Assembly (NCBI GenBank): GCA_950097015.1 | Contig: CATNEN010000001.1 | Location: 25,110,001-25,174,000, forward strand | DNA length: 64,000 nucleotides | Source: Macrostomum hystrix | Lineage: Eukaryota > Animalia > Platyhelminthes | Reading direction: 5' to 3' | Shown here: piece after piece, positions 11,714-49,097 of the stretch | How the letters are laid out: every line of letters begins with the position of its first letter | Numbering within the stretch: the first letter of the stretch is position 1 | Notes under the pieces: generated by a model | Seen by the model: only the letters and a program-made list of their open reading frames with translations | Databases searched by the model: none | What the model was told of the DNA's origin: nothing | Program-made: the position numbers and the translations under genes

Positions 11714-12116
11714 CAGAGAGTGGGGAGATGAGAGAGGGAGTTGGGAAGTTAGAGGTATCAAGGTACCACGGAGGATGACGAAGATAAGAAAAAAGCCGAG
11801 CCAATATTATCCCCAATGATGAGATGGTAAAATGGGTGTGTAAATAGATAATGGGGAGATTAAAAGAAACGGGAGCGGAAAGCATGGGAACAGCAAAACA
11901 CAGGCCGGTTGGCTCACACAGCTGGGAGACAAGCCCGGGTTCAGCATCAAGGCAGCTCGCAACGGCACCGATTTCTACTATCGATCGATAGATCAAATTT
12001 GCTTTTTAGCCAGCTCTGAGGGCAGCAGAAATTGCTGCTCACAGAAACAGAATCTAAATTAGGTTGAACTTCAAAGAAAATCCCGCTATTAATAGACGCT
12101 ATTATGTAACTCACGA

Positions 12117-12147
<31 letters not shown>

Positions 12148-12150
12148 GGC

Positions 12151-12231
<81 letters not shown>

Positions 12232-12238
12232 GGCAGAT

Positions 12239-12276
<38 letters not shown>

Positions 12277-12282
12277 GCAGAC

Positions 12283-12319
<37 letters not shown>

Positions 12320-12349
12320 GGCAGACAGACAGGCAGACAGGCAGACAGG

Positions 12350-12387
<38 letters not shown>

Positions 12388-12434
12388 GGCAGACAGACAG
12401 GCAGACAGACAGACAGACAGGCAGACAGACAGGC

Positions 12435-12475
<41 letters not shown>

Positions 12476-12618
12476 GGCAGACAGACAGGCAGACAGACAG
12501 ACAGACAGGCAGACAGATAGACAGACAGACAGACAGACAGGCAGACAGACAGACAGACAGACAGACAGGCAGACAGATAGACAGACAGACAGACAGACAG
12601 ACAGGCAGACAGACAGGC

Positions 12619-12651
<33 letters not shown>

Positions 12652-12738
12652 GGCAGACAGACAGACAGACAGGCAGACAGATAGACAGACAGACAGACAG
12701 ACAGGCAGACAGACAGACAGACAGACAGACAGACAGGC

Positions 12739-12771
<33 letters not shown>

Positions 12772-12786
12772 GGCAGACAGACAGGC

Positions 12787-12819
<33 letters not shown>

Positions 12820-12840
12820 GGCAGACAGACAGACAGACAG
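12117..12840. repeat. (GACA)n / (GGCA) tetranucleotide microsatellite
   Basis: About 720 bp of CAGA units with GGCA/GATA variants. Confidence 0.97.
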
Positions 12841-32820: not shown

Positions 32821-34970
32821 GTGCATTGTTGTGCTAAGTATTAAAAAAATTAATTTTTATAAAGTTTATATCATAGTTTTCAGCTAAAGTCCATTTGATT
32901 TTTTATAATCAAAATTGCAAATGAAGCTTCTGAAATACAAATATATTGCTAATGGTTGAAAACAAAATAATGTTATTGCTATTATAAAAAATTAATTTGC
33001 ATGCTACTAAATTATAGTTTAAATTGTTGAACTTAAGAAATACAGCAACCATAGTCCAAATCATGCAGGCTACACACTAGAAAGAGTTTGACATGCTTTC
33101 TGCCTTTATGCCAATTTATGTTAAATGGAAAATGGCCCCAAAGCCTTATGCCAAATTATGGCAATCAAAAAAGAATGCCCAGAATTAAGGAAAAATTCTA
33201 AGTTATGGTTCAGGTTAAAAAGTTTTTTAAACAGATGTTTGAAATTTTCAATTAAATATGAAACTTAATAATACATTAAGTTATACATTAATACATTATA
33301 CATTATACACTATACATTAATACATTAATAATAATACATAATACATGCTTTATATTTGTGACTAAATAAAATGTTGAACAGTAGGCCCCTAACAAAAAAC
33401 AAAAATGTGAACCAAAAATAAAATGTAAAATTTTTTGGTAAAAACAACAAGGAGTTACACAAAGGTTGTGAATTTATGTTAACATACAACATCATAGATA
33501 TTACATAAGTTGCAACTAAAATTTTGATAATTAATAAATTGTTTCTAACTACATCTAAACTTTTGTACAACTTCATTTCCACCTGCATTTTAACCGATTT
33601 GGATGCTTGGACTTTATACACCAACAAAACTAACGTCAAATTTGTTTCCAAATAATAAGCCTACACCTGAAATTTAGAGCATTAACTACATGATCTAGAC
33701 TATGTGACTATGTCTATAGGACAGCAATTCAAATTCAAAACCAAAAGCAACAAAATTTTGGATAGCAAAATAACCTAAAGTATCACAATCAATGTGCTGT
33801 ATTTTTGTCGATAGGCCTATTAATTTTGCCCTTGTGGTGGACAGTCAACATGTGACCAGCCAGAGCCAGTGCAGCCGCACTAAAACCTCTCATCCTCAGT
33901 CTAGTTAAGGTGGGGTTGGTGCACCCAGCCAGCCAGCTTGCTAAGCTGGGGGGTTTGCAAAGTCCAACCACTTTTCGCACCCCCTAGGCCGACTCAGACT
34001 TGCAAATCCAACATTTTAGTAATCAAGCTGACATATGATGCTTTAAGAAATTATGAAACGGTTTATTAGAAATTAAACATGAAATAGTGCATATCCAGGA
34101 ATAGTTAGATTAGAAGTAAAAAGGTAGATAGATTAAAAAAAGTACCACATGATTAAGCATGCTTTAAAATGTTACGTTTTATGGAAAACAAAGACAATTT
34201 TCTAATTATAGGCCTATTTTTGTTATTTTTTTTAAAACAACTTGAGGCACCGGCAAAACTTTTAAAGTTTGTGTTTTATAATTTATTAACTAATTTATTG
34301 AGCCTTAAGCTACGAATGTGTCATGATTTTTTCTCTACACTTCGTCTCTGCTTGGAACACTAAAGTTTACTTTTTTAGTGTGTAGCAGCTGTGTACTAGC
34401 TCATCTTGTATGATGGAAATTTCCAATTCCAAAAGGAGTGGAAAAATCCATTTCCACTGGTTATCGTGGTAATTCCTTGGTAATTTTCCACTTTTTTAAT
34501 TTCACTCTTTGAACAGAAGGGTGCAGTTGCTCTTGACCGCGTACTCGACGAAACAGCGTGTAATTGATAAGCAAGCACAATTGCAGATATCTACTGTATA
34601 AAAATATTATATAACAATAATCAATCAATCAATAAAAACAAAGCAGAAGCAAGTTTTGAATGTCCAATAACTAAAAGATGGTGCAGCGTCAGAAAAAAGC
34701 TTTATGTTTAATTTAACTTTTTTCAGTACAACGCAATTTCACATGTACTACTGCTAGTACTAGCACAAGAAAGTGTCATATTTGACGGCTTTAATAAATA
34801 CAGTGTTCTATTTGCAAACTTGCACAAAATCTTACGCATCGATTGAAAGTTTTGAAATAGAATGCACACGTATTAAAATTTGAAAAACTCGTAACTCACA
34901 ATAACTAACTCAAAAAACTGCCGAAACCGTCCAATCGTACTTCTCAAATTGCTGAAATGTACTTTAATAG

Positions 34971-36127
34971 TGTGATATTTTGACTTAGGTCTCTCTTTAC
35001 GTTGAGATTCCTAAATGAGGTCGGGTGTCCTACTCTTTGTGAGAGATTCCCTTTTCGCAACTCGAAAATAACGAAGACAAGACGATTCAAATCCCAAGCT
35101 AAACAGCTGATATTTAAGTGTTAACCAGTAAATAAGAGAAAGCTATGATCACTGATCAATTCCCCTGGCAGCGCTCTTTTCGTCCCCTGCCAGGTACTGT
35201 ACTTAATTCAATCCAATTCACAATTCGCACTAACAAAATCTCGATAACCGCAACACAAAACACGAACTCTACTCGATAATACGACACGATAAATAACACA
35301 AATAAATCCTAGACAAACAGATAGTCCCTATAACAAACAAGACAAATAACGCGAAACCTAACCAAAATCCCTAACATAAAACCGAGGCGACCAGCAAGCA
35401 CTTCTGCACTATGGCACAACGATAGTTCTATCGTGCCACACCTAATGTCTGTTCGACGGCGTCCCACCGATGATTGTCGGCGATATGGAGAGTGCTTCCG
35501 TGCTTGCCAATCCCTATCTAACACTCCGTCAGCAGTTGGCCAGACGTACCGAGCTCAGCGCAAGCTACTTACTGACGTGGGGTTGAGTGTGGGGGTTTTC
35601 TTTGACTAACTAGTTGGACCGGTTTACCTGTCCCGGTATCTATTTACTAGGATGCGTAACACGAATGAGAACAATATCAAGATCAAGAGCAAGAGCAAGG
35701 TCGAACGCGAGACCAGAATCACATGAGAACAATATTTCAGCGCAATAGTCAGTTTTATAGTCAAGCGCCCGCCCCAGCCCTCATTAAAGCCTGGGTGCCG
35801 GCCGCGCCGCTTGTTCTTCTGCCAGGTCGACCCTGCCGGTTAACGAACCGGCTGCTGATTGGCCCGGCTCGGGGTGTCGCACTTAAGTCGGTTCACTTCA
35901 ATCGGCTAGCCGTCCTCCCATTGGTTGGGCCCACCAGACCAGGGCTAGTCTGATGCCTTGGCTGTAGAGCAGGGGTGACCGGCCGGTCGCGTGTTAGGCC
36001 TGGCTGGGGTGCGCATGTACAAACAACTAACCTATCAGATACATTAAAATAATTCATAATATTGACGTGCGCGAATAAGTTACTACAAGTAGAAATATAC
36101 GCATTATAAAAACATGCCGACACTACA
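34971..36127 (-). repeat. 3' LTR
   Basis: + strand TGTGATATTT...CCGACACTACA; direct repeat of 43207-44363. Confidence 0.96.
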
Positions 36128-36139
36128 CTCCCCCCTCCT
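36128..36139 (-). other. Polypurine tract (AGGAGGGGGGAG) abutting the 3' LTR
   Basis: + strand CTCCCCCCTCCT immediately inside the LTR; second copy near 36260. Confidence 0.88.
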
Positions 36140-36757: not shown

Positions 36758-39700
36758 TCACAAATCCAATCTACTGGGCGGTCGGATACACGCTCTGTTT
36801 CTCAATCTCGGAGCCCAACGCTGCTGAACTGGTAATTCCTCTCTTTGTCCTCGGGGCCGGCGTCCTCGGCCTTCTCGGTTCACTACGGCTGGCGGCACTG
36901 CGCCACCGCGCGCCGTTGGCACAACTAGCGTGGCTCGCGGAATCTCTGTCCGCACTGGAATTACTGGCACCCTTGGCACTGACGGCATTGCCTGCCTGTT
37001 CGGCACCGGTATCTGTGACGGTGCTTGCCGTGGCGCTACTTGGTGTGGTGGCCAATCGATTTCAATATCCGGGTATTCTTCCTCCGGTTCCACCTCTGGC
37101 GCTCCGGCGCCGACTATCCCACGCCATGCGCATAATTTTTCTTCCGACAGATAACACGGTTTGACGCGATCTACACTGACTATTTCGTGGATCCGATCTG
37201 GCTGTTCAATGCCATGAACCTTGGGTCCGGGTTCGATTCTTAAACACTTGCCACTACCGGTGACCTCAAGTACGCGGTATGGTCCGACCCACTTCCGGTT
37301 CGTATTAAACTGTTTGTGGCCATTCGAAAGCCAAACTAAATCATTCGGTTTATAAAAATTTTGAAATACTTTTGCGTCGTAGTTGGTTTTCATTCGAGTT
37401 ATTGCTACTGATTGTCGTTGCCTAGCAACGCGAAAGGTCTCCATGCACTTCCGGTACAATTCATGCACGTGCCGATCCGCAGTTTTTTGTTCTGGCGGAG
37501 GCAAACCGATTTCTGCGTCTACTGGCAGTCTCATCTTTCTGGCAAATAGCATTTCAAATGGACTGAACTTGTTCGACTCGTTAATCGCACTGCGCTGTAC
37601 CATCACGACGTGGGGCAAGACTTCATCCCACGCGAGGTCTAGTTCGTCACGCGCTAGCTTAATTCCATCCTTCACAACTCTGACCATTCGCTCACACTTC
37701 CCATTCGCTTGTGGGTGGTAACTAGTAGTGTGGCGCAAATCAATACGGAAATTCTCCGTTAAGCTCTTCACGATATCTGCGGTGAAAGAAGCTCCTCTAT
37801 CAGAAATGAATGCTTCCGGTGCGCCATATCGGCAAATCCACTCCGTGTACAGAGTCCATGCGGTGCTCTCTGCTGTACAATCGCGGAGGGCCTTCACCTC
37901 CATCCATCCGGTGAAATGATCGACCATCAGCAGCAGGTATTTATTCCCTCGCTGCGTCGTGTCAAAGGGTCCTGCGTAGTCTATGTGGACCTTCTCGCCC
38001 ATGTAGCTACTAAGCTCGGGCTCCAATGGCGCTCTCAAATTCGGGCCGTATTTCTTTCTAGTCTGACATTCCGGACAAGTCTTAATATAGCGTTCTAAAT
38101 TCGCAGAATAATTTGGCCACCAGAACCGTTGTCTAATCAGGTCTCTGGTCTTGGAGATTCCTCCGTGGGCCATCTGATTATGATACCGCTCGAACAATTG
38201 CTTTTCGAGTTGCTCACTTTCTGGCAGCACGATCTGCTTAAATTCGCGGCCTTCATGATCTCTATAACATCTGTAGATAATGTTCGAGTCTACAGTCAAC
38301 TTGTCATAATCACTGTACAAGGACTTATAACTCCGATGCATTCCGATCCATTCGATCTTTGGCGGGCACTGCTCTCGCGCTAACAGGCGGGTTTTCAGTT
38401 TCAGCAACTCAGGCTGGCCGTCCTGAAGTTCGACCACACCTGCCGGAGAACTTATGTCTATGGCCCCGCAATCTATTCCGTCCGGTTTTCTAGCTGTATT
38501 GCACGTGGGGCACTCCTCGTGGTACTTTTTCGGGGGTCCGTCACGTGATGGTCGGCGGCTTAACGCATCTGCATTGCCATGACTCAGACCTTGGCGATAT
38601 TCTATGGTAAAATCGTACTCTTCCATTCGGCTTATCACTTCGAACTGATCGAACTGTTCGAGGATCATGTTCCATCTTCCCAACATGCCCTTCGCACCGT
38701 GGCACTTCCTCAGCCACTGCAGTGCCGCGTGATCTGTTCTGATCTTAAAATGGCGACCAATCAGATACGGGCGATAGTGCTCGAGAAAATAAATTAGGGC
38801 GTACATCTCCTTCATCGTGGTGCAGTAATTCAACTGGTGCTGATTTAACGGGTGGGACGCATAAGCGATCACCTTCTCTTCCCCGTCCTGCTCTTGCAAC
38901 AAATTCCCTCCGATCGCGCTGTCGCTGGCGTCTACATCCAGGACAAAGGGTCCAGCTTCCTTATCGAATCTGGGATAGCTGAGGACAGGCGCGTGGGTCA
39001 ATTTTTCTTTCAGCAGTTCGAAGGCTTTCTGGCACTCCTCATTCCAATGATATTTAACATCCTTTCGAGTCAGATTATTCAGCGGTTCGCTGATTCGGGC
39101 AAAGTCTTTAATAAATCGGCGATAGTAGCCTGCTAATCCTAGGAATCCTCTAAGCTCAGAGATGTTCTCTGGCCTAGGCCATCGTTGTACTTTCTCAATC
39201 TTGTCTTTACTGGTGTACACACCATGCTGACACACAGTATGACCGAGGAATTCAACCTCCTTCCGAAAGAGAAAAGTCTTTTCGGGCTTAATTTTCATTC
39301 CTGCTTCCTCTAATCTGGCAAAAATAAGATCTAAATTTCTCAGCATCTCTTCGAAATTCTTGCCCGTGCAAATGACATCATCTAAATACAACAGGGCGAA
39401 CTTGTAAGCGTAATCTCCTAAGATTCGCTGCATGATCCTTTGGAAACAGGCTGGACCGTTGGTTACTCCAAACGGCAGCACCTTCCACTGGAATAATCCA
39501 TCGTGGGTTCGAAACGCCAATTTCTCTCTGTCACTCTCGCGCACTTTGACAGACCAGTAAGCTCCTACCATGTCCAGTGTGCTAAAGTACTGGTTGCCGG
39601 CGAGGGACTCTAATGATTCTTGAATTAATGGCAATGGGAAACTGTCCTTCTTAGTCTTGTTATTCAACTGTCTAAAATCACAGCAAAAGCGAAATTCACC

Positions 39701-41632
39701 GTTCTTCTTCCGAGCGAGGACTATAGGACAACTCCACTCGGACTCTGATGGTTCTACAAGATCGTGATCTAGTAATTGGCGGACATGTTCGCTGACAAAC
39801 TCACGCTGCTCAGGGCTCTGCTTTCGCAGTGGAATTCGAACTGGAATCTCGTCGGTCGTCTCAATCTTAAATTCGCCGACGCGGGTCTTTCCAATGTCCC
39901 ACTGATTCTGCGAAATCATACCTTGATACCGGTGTAGCAACTCAATTACTTTCAGTTGCTGATTTGCTGTCAGATCAGTCTCATCCAGTCTAAATTGATC
40001 CCTTATCTTAGTTGCTTCGCTCAGCGTGGGGATCCTCTTCTGATCTTGCCGCTGCTCGGCTGGCTCAGCTTTATCTACAAGAAAAATCTCTAACTCTTCG
40101 TTCGCTGGCTCATACTCAGCAATAACCTCATTCTCATGAATGGTCTTCTCATGCTCGGTTGGGTTCATGACCCTAACAAAGGTTTCGCCGAATTCATCTA
40201 GCGACGTTAGTCCCTTTGCAACTAGAATCGACTGATCCTCATCCTGACCGCTTTTCCTGGTAACAAAACCGTACTCAGCTGCATCAGGGGTCTCCCTACA
40301 TTTGACTTTAATAAATTTCTCACTCAGTGCCGGAATCTTTGCCATGCTGGTTACTTGCAGTAGCACGCAACGTGCACTTTCATCTGCAGTGGTTAGTCTA
40401 ATCCGAATGTTATTAAATTCTAGCGTCTTCTCAGCTATATCGAGCTTAATTCGGTGACGGGTCAACAAATCGAGACCAATAATCGAAGTGGTTAGCAGGT
40501 CTTCTGCGACAAAGAACGGGTGGATCACCTCGCTCTGTCCGATTCTAACTCTTAAGGACACCTGGCCCAACAGTCTGGTAGACTGGCTGTTGGCCGATTT
40601 CATGTTAATAGCGCACGGTTTTAATGCGGCTTTACAGGAGAAGAGCCGGTCAAATAGACTCTTGTCAATCACGCAGTGCGACGCTCCCGTATCAATCAAA
40701 ATTTCTTCACTAACGCCGTTCAACTGACTGTGCAGAAATAAACCTGAGTTTATGGCCTGATTGGAAATAATCGGTTGGACAAATCCGGCTGCCTGCTTTT
40801 TTGCAAGCTTCTCTCCGGCTGCGGCTTCAACCTGCACGGAGTTTTCGAGCCTATTCATTTCCTTTCTAAATTCTCTTATTTCTTTCTTCAGTTCCTCAAC
40901 TTCCTTAGACTTCAGCCTCTCCTCTGGCTTCCTCACAGTCTGTTGCTGTGGAGCTCTACTAGTTACAGGCTCTCGCTGCTTTGCAGCTGCTTTTGCAGTC
41001 TTCACAGGTGCTTTCATTTGCACTTCTTGGCGCAATTGCCGAATCTCTTCTCGCAGCTCTGACAGTTCATTTGCTGCCGCTGCATCTACGGACTTTCGCT
41101 GCTCAGTCTCACTGACTCTCAATTCAATGCCGTTTAATTTTCGGCGGTTGGCGTCAAAGGCCTGGCTCTGAGCTCTGCGCTCTGCCTTCTCTGTTTCGAT
41201 TCCTGCGCAATCGGCGCAACTACAATAGGATTCTACAGACTCCGATATTGAATTAATAGACTGTTCGCTGTGTCCGCAGCATTCTACCTCTAAGGCGCGC
41301 TGCTTGTTACTATGAGTAGTATCACTAGCCCTAATAAAAGAAAAACTAGCTCGCTTCCTCAAATACAATAATAAATCGTAATTAGTTACTCCGCACGTGT
41401 CCCGCAAATGAAAGAAAATCTCCTTGCCTCTCCTATCTCTGAGGAATCCGTAGCCTCTGTTATAATTGTACCACACTAATTTTCCGAACTCTACGTTATT
41501 AAGCTTAATCTGCCGTGCGTCATTAATCACATCTCTCTGCTCAACCGGCCTTCGGTTATTGCCGGGGGTAAATAAATTTAGTGGCGGGGAACGGTCAACC
41601 CCCCTCTGCTGCCGTTCCGCTTGCAGTTTAAA
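36758..41632 (-). CDS. pol: Pol frame (-1 to gag): cold-shock domain, Cys-rich and coiled-coil segment, aspartic protease, RT, RNase H, integrase
   Basis: LIDTGASH (DTG at 40685-40693), LPFG...YLDD (39377-39388), LDVDASD, H-x4-H...CPEC, HIDY/SDRG/E. Frame is open from the slippery site at 41632 and has no ATG of its own near the start. Confidence 0.95.
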   Translation of the reverse strand, partial: FKLQAERQQRGVDRSPPLNLFTPGNNRRPVEQRDVINDARQIKLNNVEFGKLVWYNYNRGYGFLRDRRGKEIFFHLRDTCGVTNYDLLLYLRKRASFSFIRASDTTHSNKQRALEVECCGHSEQSINSISESVESYCSCADCAGIETEKAERRAQSQAFDANRRKLNGIELRVSETEQRKSVDAAAANELSELREEIRQLRQEVQMKAPVKTAKAAAKQREPVTSRAPQQQTVRKPEERLKSKEVEELKKEIREFRKEMNRLENSVQVEAAAGEKLAKKQAAGFVQPIISNQAINSGLFLHSQLNGVSEEILIDTGASHCVIDKSLFDRLFSCKAALKPCAINMKSANSQSTRLLGQVSLRVRIGQSEVIHPFFVAEDLLTTSIIGLDLLTRHRIKLDIAEKTLEFNNIRIRLTTADESARCVLLQVTSMAKIPALSEKFIKVKCRETPDAAEYGFVTRKSGQDEDQSILVAKGLTSLDEFGETFVRVMNPTEHEKTIHENEVIAEYEPANEELEIFLVDKAEPAEQRQDQKRIPTLSEATKIRDQFRLDETDLTANQQLKVIELLHRYQGMISQNQWDIGKTRVGEFKIETTDEIPVRIPLRKQSPEQREFVSEHVRQLLDHDLVEPSESEWSCPIVLARKKNGEFRFCCDFRQLNNKTKKDSFPLPLIQESLESLAGNQYFSTLDMVGAYWSVKVRESDREKLAFRTHDGLFQWKVLPFGVTNGPACFQRIMQRILGDYAYKFALLYLDDVICTGKNFEEMLRNLDLIFARLEEAGMKIKPEKTFLFRKEVEFLGHTVCQHGVYTSKDKIEKVQRWPRPENISELRGFLGLAGYYRRFIKDFARISEPLNNLTRKDVKYHWNEECQKAFELLKEKLTHAPVLSYPRFDKEAGPFVLDVDASDSAIGGNLLQEQDGEEKVIAYASHPLNQHQLNYCTTMKEMYALIYFLEHYRPYLIGRHFKIRTDHAALQWLRKCHGAKGMLGRWNMILEQFDQFEVISRMEEYDFTIEYRQGLSHGNADALSRRPSRDGPPKKYHEECPTCNTARKPDGIDCGAIDISSPAGVVELQDGQPELLKLKTRLLAREQCPPKIEWIGMHRSYKSLYSDYDKLTVDSNIIYRCYRDHEGREFKQIVLPESEQLEKQLFERYHNQMAHGGISKTRDLIRQRFWWPNYSANLERYIKTCPECQTRKKYGPNLRAPLEPELSSYMGEKVHIDYAGPFDTTQRGNKYLLLMVDHFTGWMEVKALRDCTAESTAWTLYTEWICRYGAPEAFISDRGASFTADIVKSLTENFRIDLRHTTSYHPQANGKCERMVRVVKDGIKLARDELDLAWDEVLPHVVMVQRSAINESNKFSPFEMLFARKMRLPVDAEIGLPPPEQKTADRHVHELYRKCMETFRVARQRQSVAITRMKTNYDAKVFQNFYKPNDLVWLSNGHKQFNTNRKWVGPYRVLEVTGSGKCLRIEPGPKVHGIEQPDRIHEIVSVDRVKPCYLSEEKLCAWRGIVGAGAPEVEPEEEYPDIEIDWPPHQVAPRQAPSQIPVPNRQAMPSVPRVPVIPVRTEIPRATLVVPTARGGAVPPAVVNREGRGRRPRGQREELPVQQRWAPRLRNRACIRPPSRLDL
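41563..41632 (-). promoter_or_regulatory. -1 programmed ribosomal frameshift signal (U UUA AAC plus predicted pseudoknot)
   Basis: Heptamer in the correct gag phase (CCT TTA AAC), 7-nt spacer, stem GGAACGG/CCGUUCC, loop GGGGGU complementary to downstream ACCCCC. Confidence 0.85.
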
Positions 41633-42882
41633 GGCTGTAGTCTCTGGGGACAGTCTCGCGCTACATGACCTGGTTGGTCGCAGATGTAACAGGTTCTGGG
41701 TCGTGCAGTAGGCGCATTCGCTCCCGCAGGATTGAAACGGTCATTGGCTGGTTGGCCTCGCCAACCTGACTGCCTTTCGACACCAGTCTGCTGTCTAGTG
41801 GGATTAAACTGCCTAGGTGGAAACATTCTGTTGTAACTGCTCATCTGCGGATTAAAATACGGTTGTGGCTGCGTCTGAGCCGGCGGTCTCATTGGCCGCT
41901 GAGTCTGCATCGATGCGAATTGCGGTCGCTGTTCCTGCCGGTAAAAGTACGGCGAACTCTCAGTGCGAAATTGCGGTGGTGGATAATAATTCGGTTCCTC
42001 TATCTGCTCAAACTGCGAGCTCTGCCTAGCGGCTTTGCCACGGAACTGTGCCTGCTTGACGGGTTCAACCTGGGAAACCAAAGTCTCAGGCGGTTCCGCT
42101 TTTCTTCTACCCTTAGCCCCTTGGCTTGCCAGCTCATCGAGGATCTCCTCGTTCTTGGCTGCTGCGAGCAAATCCATGGCGGTATAAGCGTCGCCTCTGG
42201 ACCGTCTGATAGAAATGACAGCCCGCCTAATTTTGTAATTCAAAATTCCGGCTTCAAATCGCTCAGAAATTCTTTCTCTGGCCTGATTTTCAAGGCCTGC
42301 CTTCCGAACTAATTCAACAAGAGCGTCATAAAAGTGCTCAATGCTCTCGCCTTCCTGTTGTTTCCGGTTCATCAACTGAATTTTTGCTTCTTCCTGCTGG
42401 GCAACTGGCCTGAATTTCTGCTGCAAACTCTCAACTAATCGTGGGTAAGCGAGGTTCGGGTCAAGGCCTAGATTAATATAAATCTTGTAAGCTTCTTCAT
42501 CCAGCAAAGACAATAATTGGCAGGCTCTGGCATCAGCCTCAATGGCGTTACCTTGGCAATAGTTAGTAAAAATCTTTAGAAAAACTTCAAAGTCTCCTCC
42601 GACAGCATAAGGCTTGGGTTTCGCTACTGAATTATTATTCCTATAAATAAGTCTAGGGGCAGCTCTCAAATTCTGGATCTGATTCTGCAGATCGGTAATT
42701 AAAGCTCTTAGTTGGTTATTGTCAGCTGCTAAGTTCTCTACTACTGCGGCTTGAGCATTGACCTGTGGGTCGGCTAAGTTTTGACCTTGGTCTGGCCCGA
42801 GAGCAGGGCCTTCATTCTGTTCATTGGCTACGGCCGCAGGGTCTGGGCCAGCACATCTAATTTCAACTCCTACACCCGCCAT
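41578..42882 (-). CDS. gag: Gag with capsid-like region and one CCHC zinc knuckle
   Basis: RKQQEGESIEHF (MHR-like) and CYICDQPGHVARDC at 41650-41691; first ATG at 42882. Confidence 0.93.
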   Translation of the reverse strand: MAGVGVEIRCAGPDPAAVANEQNEGPALGPDQGQNLADPQVNAQAAVVENLAADNNQLRALITDLQNQIQNLRAAPRLIYRNNNSVAKPKPYAVGGDFEVFLKIFTNYCQGNAIEADARACQLLSLLDEEAYKIYINLGLDPNLAYPRLVESLQQKFRPVAQQEEAKIQLMNRKQQEGESIEHFYDALVELVRKAGLENQARERISERFEAGILNYKIRRAVISIRRSRGDAYTAMDLLAAAKNEEILDELASQGAKGRRKAEPPETLVSQVEPVKQAQFRGKAARQSSQFEQIEEPNYYPPPQFRTESSPYFYRQEQRPQFASMQTQRPMRPPAQTQPQPYFNPQMSSYNRMFPPRQFNPTRQQTGVERQSGWRGQPANDRFNPAGANAPTARPRTCYICDQPGHVARDCPQRLQPLNCKRNGSRGGLTVPRH

Positions 42883-43186
42883 GTACAATTTTTATGAGTC
42901 ACTGATAAGAAAGTCTGCGCGGGCGCTTATCTATAATAGAATCTAACTAACCGAGGCAATAAAATTTCAATCGACCAATTGTACTAACACTGGCCTTTTA
43001 AGTTTGTAGCAAAAATAATAATAAGGTGGAATCTTTAATTAGATTGCAGAAGAACTATATCAATATAAGAACCGTGGAGGTATGTACTTCTCCAGGCTAT
43101 CTCTATAGCAGAACTCTTAAACTTTCTTCTCAACAGGAATTCTCCTTTCTCTCAATAGAAATCAATCCTCCTTCAATAGAAATCTC

Positions 43187-43204
43187 TCCTCCCTAGAGGC
43201 TCCA
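43187..43204 (-). other. Primer-binding site TGGAGCCTCTAGGGAGGA
   Basis: Starts with TGG 2 nt after the 5' LTR end, complementary to a tRNA 3' CCA; tRNA identity not assigned. Confidence 0.75.
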
Positions 43205-43206
43205 AA

Positions 43207-44363
43207 TGTGATATTTTGACTTAGGTCTCTCTTTACGTTGAGATTCCTAAATGAGGTCGGGTGTCCTACTCTTTGTGAGAGATTCCCTTTTCGCAACTCG
43301 AAAATAACGAAGACAAGACGATTCAAATCCCAAGCTAAACAGCTGATATTTAAGTGTTAACCAGTAAATAAGAGAAAGCTATGATCACTGATCAATTCCC
43401 CTGGCAGCGCTCTTTTCGTCCCCTGCCAGGTACTGTACTTAATTCAATCCAATTCACAATTCGCACTAACAAAATCTCGATAACCGCAACACAAAACACG
43501 AACTCTACTCGATAATACGACACGATAAATAACACAAATAAATCCTAGACAAACAGATAGTCCCTATAACAAACAAGACAAATAACGCGAAACCTAACCA
43601 AAATCCCTAACATAAAACCGAGGCGACCAGCAAGCACTTCTGCACTATGGCACAACGATAGTTCTATCGTGCCACACCTAATGTCTGTTCGACGGCGTCC
43701 CACCGATGATTGTCGGCGATATGGAGAGTGCTTCCGTGCTTGCCAATCCCTATCTAACACTCCGTCAGCAGTTGGCCAGACGTACCGAGCTCAGCGCAAG
43801 CTACTTACTGACGTGGGGTTGAGTGTGGGGGTTTTCTTTGACTAACTAGTTGGACCGGTTTACCTGTCCCGGTATCTATTTACTAGGATGCGTAACACGA
43901 ATGAGAACAATATCAAGATCAAGAGCAAGAGCAAGGTCGAACGCGAGACCAGAATCACATGAGAACAATATTTCAGCGCAATAGTCAGTTTTATAGTCAA
44001 GCGCCCGCCCCAGCCCTCATTAAAGCCTGGGTGCCGGCCGCGCCGCTTGTTCTTCTGCCAGGTCGACCCTGCCGGTTAACGAACCGGCTGCTGATTGGCC
44101 CGGCTCGGGGTGTCGCACTTAAGTCGGTTCACTTCAATCGGCTAGCCGTCCTCCCATTGGTTGGGCCCACCAGACCAGGGCTAGTCTGATGCCTTGGCTG
44201 TAGAGCAGGGGTGACCGGCCGGTCGCGTGTTAGGCCTGGCTGGGGTGCGCATGTACAAACAACTAACCTATCAGATACATTAAAATAATTCATAATATTG
44301 ACGTGCGCGAATAAGTTACTACAAGTAGAAATATACGCATTATAAAAACATGCCGACACTACA
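43207..44363 (-). repeat. 5' LTR with candidate CCAAT (~44094), GC box (~44004) and TATAAAA (43995-43989)
   Basis: Direct repeat of 34971-36127; promoter motifs lie in the expected order on the minus strand. Confidence 0.95.
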
Positions 44364-46276
44364 ATAGTACACTACTAGTGATACACTAATAATAGTTTCC
44401 TTCTTTCATGAAGGCATTCGCCCCAGGGGATTTTACGCTTTGGGCGCTGATTTTCCATTCTCTGCTGGAGAGTCGTTATGGAAACGAAAGTTATAGAAAC
44501 AGAAGGAAAGTGTGGATTGGACTAAGTTACCAGTTGAAAGTGCTTCCAAATTCTTGAAACATTTATCTATAATTTTTAAACATGATTATGAAACATTTCA
44601 TTGCAGGAATACAATACATTTTCAACATACTTTCCTCACTAATTACTTTACAGAATACAGCCTATTTTTGAGGCTTGGGATAGACATTGGATTGTCTTAA
44701 TAATAGTCTTGAATATCTGATTCTTATCTGATTCTGTTACAATACGCGTTGAACGTGTTTTCAGCACAAACAACTTATAGTCTATATTGCGTTACGAGTT
44801 CATCAGGAGGACAACTTTTGTTATGTTTGATTAACGATCTAGCCAAGACACTCCAGCTATTTCTTTAGTGGGTGGAGGCTACTTATAAAATATTCACCTG
44901 CTGGCTACCTGCTATAGAAGCAGAAACTTATATACAATGCCTTGTTTAGAGTTTCTGTTGCAAATATGAGTTAGGTTGCAACGGAAAACTGCAGCTTTGT
45001 CTTCAGCAGCACTTGAATTAAGTAAGGCTGCAGATTGGCACTCAAAGTTTCCCATGCCTCTTCTCCAGTTGAAGAGGAAAAAATATTTTTTTATAGAAAG
45101 ATCCAAAATTATTTGCTTGCTGCAGGCACTTGCAAGCAAGATTAGCAACGTAGAATTCTTTCATTTTTGTTGCAGTAAAATGCGGGTTTCAGGGGGAAGC
45201 AACAAGTAAAGCCTACTAAATAGCTTCCATGTCGTTTAAATTTCTCTTTTTTAAAAGGCATTGCCTGATTAAATATGAAAACCTTCACCAAATCCAACAT
45301 TCTACGCATTCCATGCTGGATGCTCTACAGTGAAAATTGAGCCTAAGGGACTCTGCACAAGGGACAGTAGCTTAGAGCCACAGATAGGAACTGCAGGTAG
45401 GGGACTATGTTTTTTGCAATCACTTTTGCACTCTTACAGTTGGATTAGGCTAATCCTGCTGGAATGAATGCAGTAAAGTTTTTGTAGTGCAATCATCTGC
45501 TGCCTGTGCACCATTCGGCAGTTAAAATAAACTCAAAAGAATTGACTACTTGCCAAAGTTTTTATACTCCTGGCTTAAAACATTTGAACTTTTAGCGAAT
45601 TCTAATAATTATAAAGTTAGCTCTTAAGGTTGCAACAATGCTTTCTTTACAATTTAATTTCTACACCCAAGAGTGACTAGCATGACTTCACCACATTGAA
45701 TTTGCATGGAAGACAACGCAACAGATTTTACCGGTCCAGTTACATCAGCTTGACATTAAACATCTTCTAACACAGGAAATCAATAGCTACTAAAGAAGTT
45801 TCTCAATATCGAAAAAATATAGGCCTTTCAAAATTTATGTTCTACGGTTACACTTTTATTTACGCTTATAATGAGTTAAAGTATTAGATTGTGAATTAGA
45901 CATCGGATTATGAACAAAAATGTGAGAAAGTATAGTTTAATATTATAAGCTTTGCTTATAATATATCTTCAGTTAACTTAACTTATAACTTCAGTTGCTA
46001 CGGTAAAATGATAAAAAAATTGCGTATAATGGAACAGAAAATATTTTGGCTTTATCAAGAACGACTTGCTAATGAAAGTTTTCTTTCATTTTACTGTATC
46101 TAAATTTAGTGCTTAAAGTATATGATAGATTGAGTATTTGGTACTGCCACTCAGTATTTAGTTTGCATTACTCAGAATCAGCAAATAAACTATGGTGCGC
46201 TCAAAGCTAGTTCATCGTCTCATTAATCTCAATATAATTGAGTCGAACAGCATAATTATTCAATCATCTGCGTTGG

Positions 46277-47443
46277 TTACGTGCACATTGTCTGCAGCTG
46301 ACTTAGCTCGGCCGCTGAGAGCGTATCATTCGCAATCGCGTAACAGACGTAGCGACCTTTCAGAGCGCCGTTAGAGTTGCTGGTGTAGCCAAGGCGAAGA
46401 CAGAGCGGTGTGCCAGAGCAAGAGCCGCCAGAATCTTCAGATGCTACAGCAACGCCTTTACTATAGAAGGTGGTCAGGCTAGCTCCGTTGAACACTGCAC
46501 CAGCTGAAGCGTACTGCAAGTCTGATCCACTGTACATCGAGGTGGTGGATATTTTCCTGACGCAGGCATGCGAGGGGCCACCTGAACTGGGAAATATGTG
46601 CGTAATGCTGAGTTTCTCCCCCGTATCGAAAAATTCTCCACGACTCGAAGTCGGCGAGTTGCAGTCATAGAAGTAGTGATAGGACTGATGACTTTCTGAC
46701 GTCTGTCGATGAAGATTAGCATAAAAGGTAAACTTCTTAGTGTGCGCCAGGTAATTTGGCACCAACCTGTTTCCATCTGTGTCAATCTCGATGTAGTCAG
46801 AAGTGCTTCCGCCAGGAAAGCTTACTCCGGTACTGCTCTGAGTGAGAGATCCATGCGGTGCGGCGTTGTACTTCAACGGGTTGGCCAGGTTCGTGTAGCC
46901 CTGTCGAAAGTCAAAGAAGACGATCAGCTTAGACTGGAGAGCAGCGGGAATCGCAACTGATCCTCCAGTTTCTGATGCCGTTACCGCTTCTGGCATCGGG
47001 GCAGCAGCAGCAGCAGCTGGGGCAGCAGCAGCAGCAGCAGCTGGGGCAGCAGCAGCAGCAGCTGGGGCAGCAGTAGCCAGCTGAGCAGGGAGGCTGGTCA
47101 AGACGCTCGCCAAATTCGGCAGCTCCAAGTTCCTCGCGTGACTTACGCACGGATCAGTTCCAGGGACGTTCGCCGGTGAGAATTGGGTGGCCAGTTGCTG
47201 CGAGGTTCCAAAGTAGCAAATACCTGAGCTGCTCCTGAACACCACGGAGCAGTTGGTTGTGAGCGCGCACTCAACAAAGCAGGCCCTCGAGTCGATGGCA
47301 CCATCCAGCTTGGTGAGCTGGGCCAGGGTCGCGCTGGACGGACAAGTTTGGGTCAAGCTGAAATTCACCTTCAGAGTGACGGCACAGTCGGGTCCCACAG
47401 TTAGGAGGACCATTGCAGCCAGAAGCAGAGCCTGACCTCTCAT
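46277..47443 (-). CDS. Secreted protein family copy 1: signal peptide, PAN/apple-like Cys domain, Ala/Pro linker, LamG/ConA-like domain
   Basis: Intronless ORF; hydrophobic N-terminus from MRGQ; CFVECA-x4-CSVVF-x6-CYF; VFFDF...LRLGY...ALKGR...DTLSAAELSQL resembles LamG/pentraxin ends. Domain names are inferred. Confidence 0.8.
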   Translation of the reverse strand: MRGQALLLAAMVLLTVGPDCAVTLKVNFSLTQTCPSSATLAQLTKLDGAIDSRACFVECALTTNCSVVFRSSSGICYFGTSQQLATQFSPANVPGTDPCVSHARNLELPNLASVLTSLPAQLATAAPAAAAAAPAAAAAAAPAAAAAAPMPEAVTASETGGSVAIPAALQSKLIVFFDFRQGYTNLANPLKYNAAPHGSLTQSSTGVSFPGGSTSDYIEIDTDGNRLVPNYLAHTKKFTFYANLHRQTSESHQSYHYFYDCNSPTSSRGEFFDTGEKLSITHIFPSSGGPSHACVRKISTTSMYSGSDLQYASAGAVFNGASLTTFYSKGVAVASEDSGGSCSGTPLCLRLGYTSNSNGALKGRYVCYAIANDTLSAAELSQLQTMCT

Positions 47444-49097
47444 TGCCAATTTCCAAGCAAGAGACTCGCTACACAAAATAGGGAGATATTTTTCCAGCAG
47501 ATGCAAACTGCCATCCACACTCCAAAGTGGGTCGTGTGCGTGCTGCTTCTATGCGCCTGTGGCTTTAATTTATAACAAGCGGATCGCTCCAACTAATATG
47601 AAACCCAGTTACCATGGCAAAGCATGATTTGGCGCTAAATTTAGAGTAAAACTTGTTCAAGCAATTTGCATGAATGCAAAATCGTAGTTTTTATCGAGAA
47701 AAAACTGCCAGGCACAAAAGGCATTTGCAGGTTAGCTGTTCGAATGATGATCAACCAACGATGCGTTCTCTTTACAGAGAGTTCACAGAGTACTCACGTC
47801 TAATTTAGAAAAAGTACGCCACTTTTTTAACTTTACCCAGCTCACAGTTAGCGGAAAAATGCGCAGAAAATGGTTTCATTTTTTAGTAATTTGTAAAGAA
47901 GAAAAACAAAAGAACGAATTCTCTGTAAAAAGACATGGTACATCAAATATTAAAAATATTGAACTACAAAACCAAGTAAAAAATTTGAATGGAAAAGGTT
48001 TTAAGATTTCCATTGTCGATTAGCTTTGTAGCGAAAAAAATAGCGGAATTTTCTAATTCGAGTTCATAGCAAAAGCAGAGACACTAGCGTTACTACTATT
48101 AGTGCGGTAGATGAAACGAGCCTTCTAAAATATATAAGATAATTTAAATACCTTTTTTGATAAAGGAATCGGCATAATGAAAAGCAAGGAGCCATACTCT
48201 TACGAGTACATTTCATTTTTCACTGAAAGGAAATAATCAAAGGATGATTTACAGTCGGATGTAATTTTACTCAACTTTATATTCATATTCTTCACATTCA
48301 ACTTTACCCGTTCAAATGATAGGCGAAAATTTTCCAATTCAGATGAAATGGGCTTGTCAAGTCAGGACTGTCATGTCGTGAGCTGACCCCTGACATCTCA
48401 GCTAAAACTTTGGAAGCTTCTCTGCAATCTCTGCTTTAGGAAACCGATTGAATGCTCTCTGGCATCAGAAAGGCGTGTAGGACTGTCGCATTGCTTCTTT
48501 TATACACCCATAGCCTGGGCATAGGGGAGCAAAAGAACAGAGAATCATTTTGCATACTGATAGGACAGGTGTTCTATTGGTTTCACATTGCTGAATATCG
48601 ACAGTGAGGGGGTCCAGTGGGTTAATTTGCAAGCATTTGGAGCCCATTATTTGGTTTTAGCATTCTGCCTAGTGTCTTGGAAAACTGTAGGACTGGCTAG
48701 AAAATTGCTCGTGAAATCAAAAGAGGCAAGAAACTCTCTTGTATACAGAGAAAAGTTTCTAACAGTTTGCTTTTTCGGCAGCAATCTTACCCTATTCTTC
48801 CAAAAGAAGTGTCTCGTGCCTACTGATTACTGAACACTAAAATAGGCGTGCGATATAGTGGGTACTGTAAGCTCGAAATTAAATTCTTCATACAAAAAAA
48901 ACATTTTAAATTGCATCAACAGATGAAATTTTACAGTATGGCGGTGCCTAACCCAACTCTACACAGCTGTGAAGTGCTAGAAATTTTTGCGGGTGTGGTA
49001 GTTTTGGTCTAGCTTTCGTGTTCTCCACTTTAAAATATCTTTTGTTGGCGTGCACCTGAAAACGCCGTAAACCAAGATGATTATCTTCCACATAAAC

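Follow-up and report, generated by a model that had tools for sequence, protein, structure and literature searches.

A predicted cold-shock domain between nucleocapsid and protease in a clade of Ty3/Gypsy retrotransposons of the flatworm Macrostomum hystrix

In LTR retrotransposons and retroviruses the nucleic-acid chaperone is the nucleocapsid (NC), a small, basic, zinc-knuckle protein. Accessory domains such as the chromodomain, the dUTPase and the extra RNase H have each exposed a distinct aspect of element biology. Among Ty3/Gypsy elements, the integrase chromodomain of chromoviruses and the extra RNase H of the Tat group are lineage-specific gains that have been kept clade-wide. In the betaretroviruses MPMV and MMTV a dUTPase lies between NC and protease (PR), is reached by -1 frameshifting and forms part of an NC-dUTPase transframe protein. 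LINE-1 ORF1p, an RNA-binding chaperone, couples a coiled coil to an RRM. The pairing of a cold-shock domain (CSD) with a retroviral-type CCHC knuckle is found in Lin28 and in plant proteins of the CSP/GRP2 type, where it serves RNA binding and chaperoning.

The element described here lies on the minus strand of the window, by which is meant the whole 64-kb stretch of DNA that was analysed. It is a 9.4 kb Ty3/Gypsy retrotransposon with intact Gag and Pol, and its Gag-Pol appears to carry a CSD at the junction of NC and PR (Table 1). Its likeness to the betaretroviral arrangement is an accessory domain between NC and PR reached by -1 frameshifting, but the dUTPase is an enzyme of retroviruses, whereas the domain of this Metaviridae-type element is a predicted RNA-binding OB fold. 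As with the chromodomain and the Tat RNase H, the gain has been kept clade-wide, yet the CSD differs from both in type and in its position at the NC-PR junction. The combination of CSD and coiled-coil-like linker can also be likened to the coiled coil and RNA-binding chaperone domain of LINE-1 ORF1p. Like Lin28 and the plant proteins, the element places CSD and CCHC in one polypeptide, but there is one knuckle only, and the pair is joined by ribosomal frameshifting within Gag-Pol whereas the others are free cellular proteins. The Lin28-like pairing proposed in a preliminary description of this DNA stands as an analogy of domain content and not as membership, since inside Gag-Pol the CCHC knuckle precedes the CSD, the reverse of the order in those proteins.

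Table 1. Features of the element, in its 5' to 3' direction (window coordinates)
Feature	Position	Strand	Basis or remark
Target-site duplication ATAG, 4 bp	44364..44367; second copy 34967-34970	.	flanks read
5' LTR, 1157 bp, TG..CA	43207..44363	-	100% identical to 34971-36127
Putative primer-binding site, begins TGG 2 nt past the 5' LTR	43188..43204	-	sequence read
Gag ORF from first ATG; stop 41578-41580	41578..42882	-	weak Pfam matches to Retrotrans_gag and PNMA
Pol open frame of 1660 codons, shifted by -1 from the Gag frame	36758..41740	-	frame analysis
Single CCHC zinc knuckle (nucleocapsid), Gag 398-415	41644..41697	-	PF00098, 32.1 bits (cut-off 20.8)
-1 slippery heptamer U_UUA_AAC, gag phase 0, in the 160-nt gag/pol overlap	41626..41632	-	frame analysis
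Stem-loop, 11 bp, 7 nt downstream of the slip site	41588..41618	-	MFE -18.8 kcal/mol
Cold-shock domain: beta1-beta3, inserted helix, beta4, beta5	41279..41494	-	profile searches, structure prediction
E/A/K/R/Q-rich charged linker, coiled-coil-like in appearance, CSD to protease	40745..41233	-	composition
Aspartic protease, ORF residues 269-358	40457..40726	-	PF13975, 34.9 bits; PF13650, 32.5 bits
Reverse transcriptase, ORF residues 607-766	39233..39712	-	PF00078, 119 bits
RNase H, ORF residues 829-960	38651..39046	-	PF17919 and PF17917, ~106 bits
Integrase, H2C2 zinc and catalytic core, residues 1106-1273	37712..38215	-	PF17921, 64 bits; PF00665, 31.7 bits
Polypurine tract AGGAGGGGGGAG, adjoins the 3' LTR	36128..36139	-	sequence read
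3' LTR, 1157 bp	34971..36127	-	100% identity with 43207-44363

The identical LTRs with their TG..CA ends and the ATAG duplication bear out the earlier statement that the element is intact. The short duplication around these LTRs, the CCHC-bearing Gag and the PR-RT-RNaseH-IN order given by Pfam are those of a Ty3/Gypsy element; a Pfam scan of the window Pol detected no chromodomain. As had been stated, the Pol frame does not open with protease, the Pfam PR match starting well inside the ORF, and the CSD begins (41494-41491) 51 codons past the end of the knuckle, against a first estimate of about 50. The 70 residues originally singled out are the minus-strand translation of 41285-41494, where the plus strand holds stops only. 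Pfam matches of the charged linker to coiled-coil families are at noise level only.

The identity of the domain was assessed by profile searches. With the window copy alone, PF00313 scores 23 bits against a gathering score of 27 and covers profile positions 3-31 of 66, and within the whole window Pol it scores 18.6 bits. The same profile reaches 27.8 bits over positions 3-64 in a relative, L009, and so passes the Pfam cut-off; in single-ORF sister families it scores 28.5-33.5 bits in a genome scan and 22-27 bits on the complete polyprotein. A sequence search of the PDB returned cold-shock and Y-box proteins as all of its best 40 matches (best E 3e-4). A profile built from two sequences, the window copy and a 47%-identical relative, was searched against 1.84 billion proteins and gave 116 matches at E<=1e-3, 114 of which carry PF00313. 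The best of these library matches are multi-CSD proteins from metagenomes, and the full-length, single-stretch ones include a foraminiferal protein with both CSD and CCHC (P0051, Pfam 49.7 bits). Comparison with canonical CSDs by hhalign, five host Y-box paralogues included, gave a probability of 98.9% (E 3.8e-17, 66 columns). In the alignment the aromatic face formed by RNP1 (YGF) and RNP2 (FFH) is retained, and equivalents of five of the six nucleic-acid-contacting residues of Bc-Csp (W8, Y15, F17, F27 and H29) are kept, giving the W/Y/F/F/H binding face of cold-shock proteins. The equivalent of the sixth, F30, is L in the window copy, A in L009 and F in two further proteins (P0002 and P0104). 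At 70 residues the domain is too short to support a reliable deep tree.

Modelling of the segment by AlphaFold with a 25-row alignment (pLDDT 91.4, pTM 0.80) returned a five-stranded antiparallel beta-barrel of the OB type (strands 5-14, 19-24, 29-33, 54-61 and 69-76), the fold predicted to be shared with CspA/CspB, YB-1, Unr/CSDE1 and Lin28. It differs from these proteins in the alpha-helix of about nine residues inserted between beta3 and beta4, in the longer beta4-beta5 loop and in being embedded in a retrotransposon polyprotein. The closest structure found by VIA-align was Unr CSD1 (Z 11.6, rmsd 1.4 A over 70 residues), with CspA and YB-1 at Z ~10 and Lin28 also matching; the best 50 matches were all CSDs, as were the top matches of Foldseek. 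The evidence from the fold is not independent of that from sequence, because the alignment behind the model includes canonical CSDs, and modelling from the single sequence gave a poor result (pLDDT 42.7). The identification made in the preliminary description is borne out by the sequence profiles, by the comparison of profile with profile and by the predicted fold, and on their combined reading the segment encodes a genuine cold-shock domain.

Some searches were less informative. A word-indexed search of proteins 0.55-1.75x as long as the query found no match, either for Pol residues 1-130 or for the stretch from CCHC to CSD in a single-ORF family, a result that says little because shared 5-mers and similar length are required. 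The ESM Atlas, queried with the CSD-linker-PR region, returned a weak retropepsin cluster only, and a genome-contig scan for P0002 gave no match. Set aside were bacterial CSD halves and a decayed CSD-like stretch lacking ORFs (contigs L013 and L014) from a metagenome-contig scan, and ordinary CSD halves of a giant-virus MAG and a phage from viral-contig scans.

In the window element the slip site, a canonical X_XXY_YYZ heptamer, lies four codons past the CCHC knuckle. The stem-loop that follows it has the same energy as shuffled sequences and is thus not significant alone (z = 0.07). Pairing of its G-rich loop with a run of C at about 41563-41568 would give a candidate pseudoknot, recognised by eye only. 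In the Pol frame the first Met falls after the CSD, and with none upstream of it the domain would be made only as a Gag-Pol fusion; together with the in-phase heptamer in the overlap, this agrees with the proposal that knuckle and CSD are joined by frameshifting. The further suggestion that the domain is made only at Pol stoichiometry applies to the window subclade and fails for four sister families, in which Gag-CCHC-CSD-PR-RT-RH-IN is one frame and the amount of CSD should consequently equal that of Gag. The only public run that holds the element is a metatranscriptome from sediment; its two 151-nt contigs, which may derive from RNA, cover gag and the 5' UTR but none of the CSD.

Six families with the order CCHC-CSD-PR were found in the M. 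hystrix genome, four of them with a single-ORF Gag-Pol of ~2000 aa, and the CSD occupies the same position, directly upstream of PR, in all six. In a tree of RT-RH sequences with unnamed Gypsy families as outgroups, the six form one clade with a Macrostomum lignano protein, P0118 (support 98/95). Ten further Gypsy families, sampled from this genome as shorter stretches, are without a CSD and fall outside this clade. P0118, which nests within the CSD clade, is also the closest Pol among public proteins, with 70% identity to the window Pol and 84% to that of L009. CSD, linker and PR follow one another in the same way in P0002, a protein from a marine metagenome. Ty3/Mdg4 (Gypsy) families have been catalogued in M. 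lignano, and the text of that catalogue does not mention a cold-shock domain (PMC12801592). A literature search found no earlier account of an LTR retrotransposon with such an accessory domain, a result that, with the absence of the CSD from 10/10 of the other families sampled, upholds the view that the domain is foreign to the canonical Ty3/Gypsy architecture.

Selection on the domain was assessed from pN, pS and per-domain identity; no dN/dS ratio could be computed, since every between-family pair is saturated at synonymous sites. Between the window element and L009, amino-acid identity is 57% in the CSD, 40% in the adjacent linker and 67% in PR, with pS saturated. Among the single-ORF families the corresponding values are 47-63% for the CSD and 52-60% for PR, against 17-35% for the flanking linkers. 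Many copies of the elements retain intact open frames. Across the six families of the RT clade the domain has persisted past saturation of synonymous sites, at a level of conservation close to that of protease and far above that of the linkers around it. Maintenance by selection had been proposed from the window copy, and judged by these sequence comparisons the CSD clade keeps the domain under purifying selection.

The reading favoured here, with a probability of roughly 0.6, is that the domain is a genuine CSD, acquired a single time by the ancestor of one flatworm Ty3/Gypsy clade, retained by purifying selection and acting as a nucleic-acid chaperone beside NC. The domain would be a five-stranded OB-type barrel with the RNP1/RNP2 aromatics and an extra beta3-beta4 helix, set in a Gag-Pol of predicted order CA-NC(CCHC)-~45-aa linker-CSD-charged linker-PR-RT-RNaseH-IN that is one open frame in the four sister families. 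In the window element it would be made only when ribosomes slip by -1 at U_UUA_AAC. Next to a single-knuckle nucleocapsid it may provide a second module for binding and chaperoning single-stranded nucleic acid, and an auxiliary RNA/ssDNA chaperone role of this kind is suggested by analogy, since CSDs and NC proteins act so elsewhere. Such a module could aid in binding or packaging genomic RNA through Gag-Pol, in annealing the primer tRNA, or in melting secondary structure at strand transfers; an NC-CSD transframe protein may persist past protease processing.

Other explanations differ in whether the domain is real and in what it does. That an RNP1-like motif arose by chance in a beta-rich spacer, or that the segment is a piece of a captured host gene carried along neutrally, is very improbable: the sub-threshold Pfam match of the window copy over half the model and the poor single-sequence fold would suit it, but PF00313 in nearly all library matches, an hhalign alignment across the full domain, intact frames in many copies and protease-like identity over an RT clade that is deep and saturated at synonymous sites all speak against it. 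A real domain might instead act chiefly as a transframe module, structural or regulatory, that lies between NC and PR and binds nucleic acid only secondarily. In the manner of retroviral p6*/transframe regions, it would then govern the incorporation of Gag-Pol, dimerisation or the moment at which protease becomes active. The invariant place of the CSD immediately upstream of PR and the long charged, coiled-coil-like segment that follows it in the window subclade fit this proposal, which is nonetheless unlikely; retention of the aromatic face is unexpected of a mere spacer, and it is the barrel that is conserved, whereas the linkers, which would bear the cleavage sites, evolve fast.

About as unlikely is the proposal that a real, conserved CSD serves host mimicry and control of RNA fate rather than chaperoning in replication. 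In germline or stem cells, a Y-box/Lin28/Unr-like module might steer the element mRNA into mRNPs for storage or translation; alternatively, it might shield that mRNA from small-RNA silencing. In the structural models the nearest folds are indeed those of eukaryotic translational regulators (Unr CSD1, with YB-1 and Lin28 matching), at least five Y-box paralogues and also Unr-like genes are present in the host, and production of the CSD at the level of Gag in four families would suit an abundant mRNP factor. Against this, the CSD of the window element would occur only in a frameshifted minority product, tethered to Gag-Pol, and a free CSD protein is without evidence. The retroelement CSDs are also highly diverged, at 22-33 Pfam bits compared with ~90 for host Y-box CSDs, which argues against close mimicry. 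A somewhat slimmer chance still is given to the stronger form, in which the domain imitates host regulators of the Y-box/Unr/Lin28 type as a counter-defence or RNA-fate module beyond mere chaperoning; whether set free from Gag(-Pol) or still part of it, the domain might then direct element RNA to mRNP granules of germline or neoblasts, boost its translation, or protect it against piRNA/small-RNA silencing.

With the favoured reading, a cold-shock OB fold beside a single-knuckle NC, kept through deep divergence, would amount to a natural experiment on the need for chaperoning and RNA binding, and the CSD-CCHC pairing in this clade would have an origin independent of Lin28 and the plant CSPs. 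The question is approachable because the elements look young, are numerous and occur in a flatworm genus with transgenesis tools. Domain-based TE annotation pipelines are likely to miss or misread the CSD region, an example being P0118, the one public M. lignano gene model for a clade member, which begins just before PR and leaves the region upstream outside it.

The element carrying the cold-shock domain (CSD) in the window is an intact, very recently inserted Ty3/Gypsy-type element of 9.4 kb, and it has the features by which Ty3/Gypsy LTR retrotransposons are defined. The CSD peptide is a minus-strand translation, the plus strand giving stops only, and lies near the start of a Pol open frame of 1660 codons. 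Consistent with the preliminary description, intactness is indicated by the identical LTRs, the ATAG flanking both outer sides of the pair and the long Pol frame, and that frame does not open with the protease (PR), which the CSD precedes.

Features of the window element and other loci mentioned in the text (Pol residues are counted from the GTG at 41530; G000 is the genome of the window)
Feature	Position	Strand	Basis or remark
LTR pair	34971-36127 and 43207-44363	-	1157 bp each, 100% identical, TG..CA ends
Candidate primer-binding site	2 nt inside 5' LTR	-	TGG start; sequence reading
Polypurine tract	abuts 3' LTR	-	sequence reading
Gag ORF	upstream of Pol, other frame	-	436 codons, one CCHC knuckle (Pfam, 32 bits)
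Frameshift heptamer	41632-41626	-	in gag/pol overlap
Pol open frame	41740 to 36758	-
CSD peptide	41285-41494	-
Aspartic protease	Pol residues 269-358	-	Pfam
Reverse transcriptase (RT)	Pol residues 607-766	-	Pfam
RNase H	Pol residues 829-960	-	Pfam
Integrase (IN)	Pol residues 1106-1273	-	Pfam
X1 contig match, gag	42363-42512
X1 contig match, 5' UTR	42909-43059
413-codon ORF	46277-47518	-	adjoins insertion site
24-bp satellite array	2000-11721		9.7 kb
(ACAG)n array	12117-12840		after the satellite
Single-ORF family L038	G000:C39:17711800-17721799
Truncated window-family copy L008	G000:C14:1336613-1339714		pentapeptide ORF at 640-1551
Host Y-box-type genes (L026-L030)	G000:C39:18597571, C3:9298226, C10:2406428, C30:2369550, C39:20748517		about 90 Pfam bits each

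Taken by itself, the window copy gives borderline sequence evidence of identity: the Pfam CSD family PF00313 scored 23 bits, below its cut-off of 27, with only profile positions 3-31 of 66 aligned. A phmmer search of PDB sequences returned cold-shock/Y-box proteins as its top 40 matches (best E 3e-4), restricted to the N-terminal half of the domain; only two unrelated proteins came up, with E near 1 or higher. The CSD of L009, a second family in the same genome, scores 27.8 bits over its full length (profile 3-64), above the Pfam cut-off. A profile made from the two segments (47% identical) and searched against 1.84 billion representative proteins gave 116 matches at E<=1e-3, 114 of which carry PF00313 by Pfam scan. 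Several of these were single and full-length, among them one to a 239-aa foraminiferal protein (P0051) that combines a Pfam-passing CSD (49.7 bits) with a CCHC knuckle. Profile-profile comparison of the retroelement alignment with canonical CSDs, a set that took in five Y-box-like genes from this genome, gave 98.9% probability (E 3.8e-17) over 66 columns, covering the whole barrel.

AlphaFold2 modelling with a 25-row alignment (pLDDT 91.4, pTM 0.80) predicted five strands (model residues 5-14, 19-24, 29-33, 54-61 and 69-76) and a helix (42-50). The best Foldseek matches in the PDB were CspA, Bc-Csp, CRHSP-24, Unr and YB-1; VIA-align superimposed the model on Unr CSD1 with Z 11.6 and an rmsd of 1.4 A over 70 residues, its best 50 entries being CSDs or OB domains closely related to them. 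As canonical CSDs were part of the alignment, and modelling from the single sequence did poorly (pLDDT 42.7) although it gave the same beta1-beta3 plus helix, the fold corroborates the identity and is not independent proof. Equivalents of W8, Y15, F17, F27 and H29 of the Bc-Csp aromatic binding face are present, the sole replacement being F30 to L. Compared with textbook CSDs, a helix is inserted between beta3 and beta4 and the beta4-beta5 loop is longer. With the exception of the Pfam cut-off on the window copy, the segment is a CSD by sequence, profile, predicted fold and motif, as had been proposed from the sequence pattern.

The genome surveyed (220 Mb, 42 contigs) holds four window-family copies with the complete Pol frame (99-100% identity), one with a shortened frame and two fragments. 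L009 is degenerate, with RT 89-92% identical to that of the window copy. Beyond host genes, a PF00313 genome scan gave about twenty matches of 28-33 bits over the full domain length, sitting in open frames of about 2000 codons. These represent four more Gypsy families (L038, L039, L040, L041), with identical LTRs, whose single ORF runs through Gag, CCHC, CSD, PR, RT, RNase H and IN with no frameshift between Gag and IN. Their CSD lies about 30 residues past the knuckle and about 25 ahead of the protease, and matches canonical CSDs (hhalign 97%). It also matches that of the window family (hhalign 80%, E 1.3e-5), both having the insertion between beta3 and beta4. Their RNase H-IN spacer, of about 240 residues, is poorly conserved. 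Ten other Gypsy families of this genome, sampled via RT, had no CSD-like segment upstream of the protease, even when every HMMER filter was switched off.

In a maximum-likelihood RT-RNase H tree, the phylogenetic check suggested in the preliminary description, the six CSD families and a Macrostomum lignano Pol (P0118) formed one group (98/95 support) that included none of the ten CSD-less families or the non-flatworm outgroups, so a single gain suffices. P0118 shows 70% identity to the Pol of the window element and 84% to that of L009, a likeness from which a Macrostomum-like flatworm was taken to be the host; its gene model begins just ahead of the protease, leaving the CSD region outside. 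Beyond flatworm records, a 234-aa marine metagenome protein (P0002), from a contig assigned to a bacterial MAG, has the CSD-charged linker-protease order of the window element, with CSDs 35% identical, and a fragment of 59 aa in a different sample aligns with the C-terminal half. A full-text literature search found no description of a CSD in a retrotransposon Gag-Pol architecture, and the words cold and CSD are absent from the M. lignano LTR retrotransposon catalogue (PMC12801592) and from the DARTS paper. Within the literature searched, the accessory domain of this Gypsy clade is new.

Pol of the window element is in the -1 frame relative to Gag, with an overlap of about 160 nt containing one in-phase X_XXY_YYZ heptamer, U_UUA_AAC, four codons past the knuckle end. 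A stem-loop starts 7 nt downstream, its energy no better than that of shuffles (z 0.07); a G-run in its loop could pair with a downstream C-run in a candidate pseudoknot seen by eye. The first Met codon of the Pol frame follows the CSD, and the domain can therefore arise only within the Gag-Pol fusion, in the order knuckle, linker of ~45 residues, CSD, charged E/A/K/R/Q-rich stretch of ~165 residues, protease. The earlier proposal of a frameshifted product joining knuckle and CSD agrees with this, while synthesis at Pol stoichiometry holds for the window element but not for the single-ORF families, where the CSD is made in the same quantity as Gag. The Lin28-like pairing likewise stands in part: the CSD and CCHC content is shared with Lin28 and plant cold-shock proteins, but the order is reversed and the context different, making this an analogy and not membership.

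Because synonymous sites have reached saturation in comparisons between families (pS 0.7-1.0), per-domain amino-acid identity was used in place of a dN/dS ratio. Between the window copy and L009 it is 57% in the CSD, 40% in the flanking linkers, 67% in the protease and 92% in RT; among the single-ORF families the values are 47-63%, 17-35% and 52-60%, with 81-89% in RT. The barrel is a conserved island amid fast-evolving linkers, the pattern that purifying selection on a folded, functional domain would be expected to leave, in line with the earlier suggestion that it is maintained by selection. Chance resemblance or a neutral passenger is effectively excluded.

The CSD, conserved and intact in its aromatic face, is part of Gag-Pol, next to a single-knuckle nucleocapsid (NC). 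By analogy with CSDs and NC proteins elsewhere, it would add single-strand nucleic-acid binding and melting/annealing, a reading to which we assign a probability of about 0.6. It might serve in genomic-RNA capture by Gag-Pol, primer tRNA placement or reverse-transcription strand transfers. Betaretroviruses have an NC-dUTPase transframe protein, and an NC-CSD counterpart may similarly persist after processing. A host-mimicking module acting on RNA fate or against silencing would fit the closeness of the predicted fold to Unr and YB-1 and the Gag-level amounts in single-ORF families, but is unlikely given that the domain is tethered to Gag-Pol and has little similarity with the Y-box CSDs of the host. 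Equally doubtful is a transframe module whose main role is structural or regulatory, in the control of Gag-Pol assembly or of protease activation. The five host Y-box-type genes and at least one multi-CSD Unr/CSDE1-like gene (L050) are potential interaction partners or donors, but none of them is close to the CSDs of the retroelements.

The genome is rich in distinct Ty3/Gypsy families: more than 100 scored matches have RT 41-47% identical to that of the window (loci L051-L060), the Pol frame in most of them being open over 1300-1650 codons, and the LTR-element population looks young and is probably active. The truncated copy L008 abuts a 303-codon ORF of MGDEA/MGDQA pentapeptide repeats. Two 16 kb metagenome contigs, Ga0126338_10001158 (L013) and Ga0126339_10001401 (L014), have no ORF of at least 150 codons. 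In each, a stretch full of stops includes a 'GRGKEIFFHLSD' motif similar to the CSD of the window family, which could be a decayed relative or chance. Two 151-nt contigs of a 2020 sediment metatranscriptome (X1), the sole public run with any of the window element, are at least 99% identical to its gag and 5' UTR; they do not cover the CSD and may be of DNA origin. That sediment is probably home to the host species or to a very close relative with the family. In the window itself, the 413-codon ORF, which includes a long run of Ala/Pro and matches no Pfam family, may be a host gene exon, and the satellite (about 415 copies, 90% matches) and (ACAG)n arrays account for long overlapping 'ORFs' without Pfam hits in their part of the sequence.
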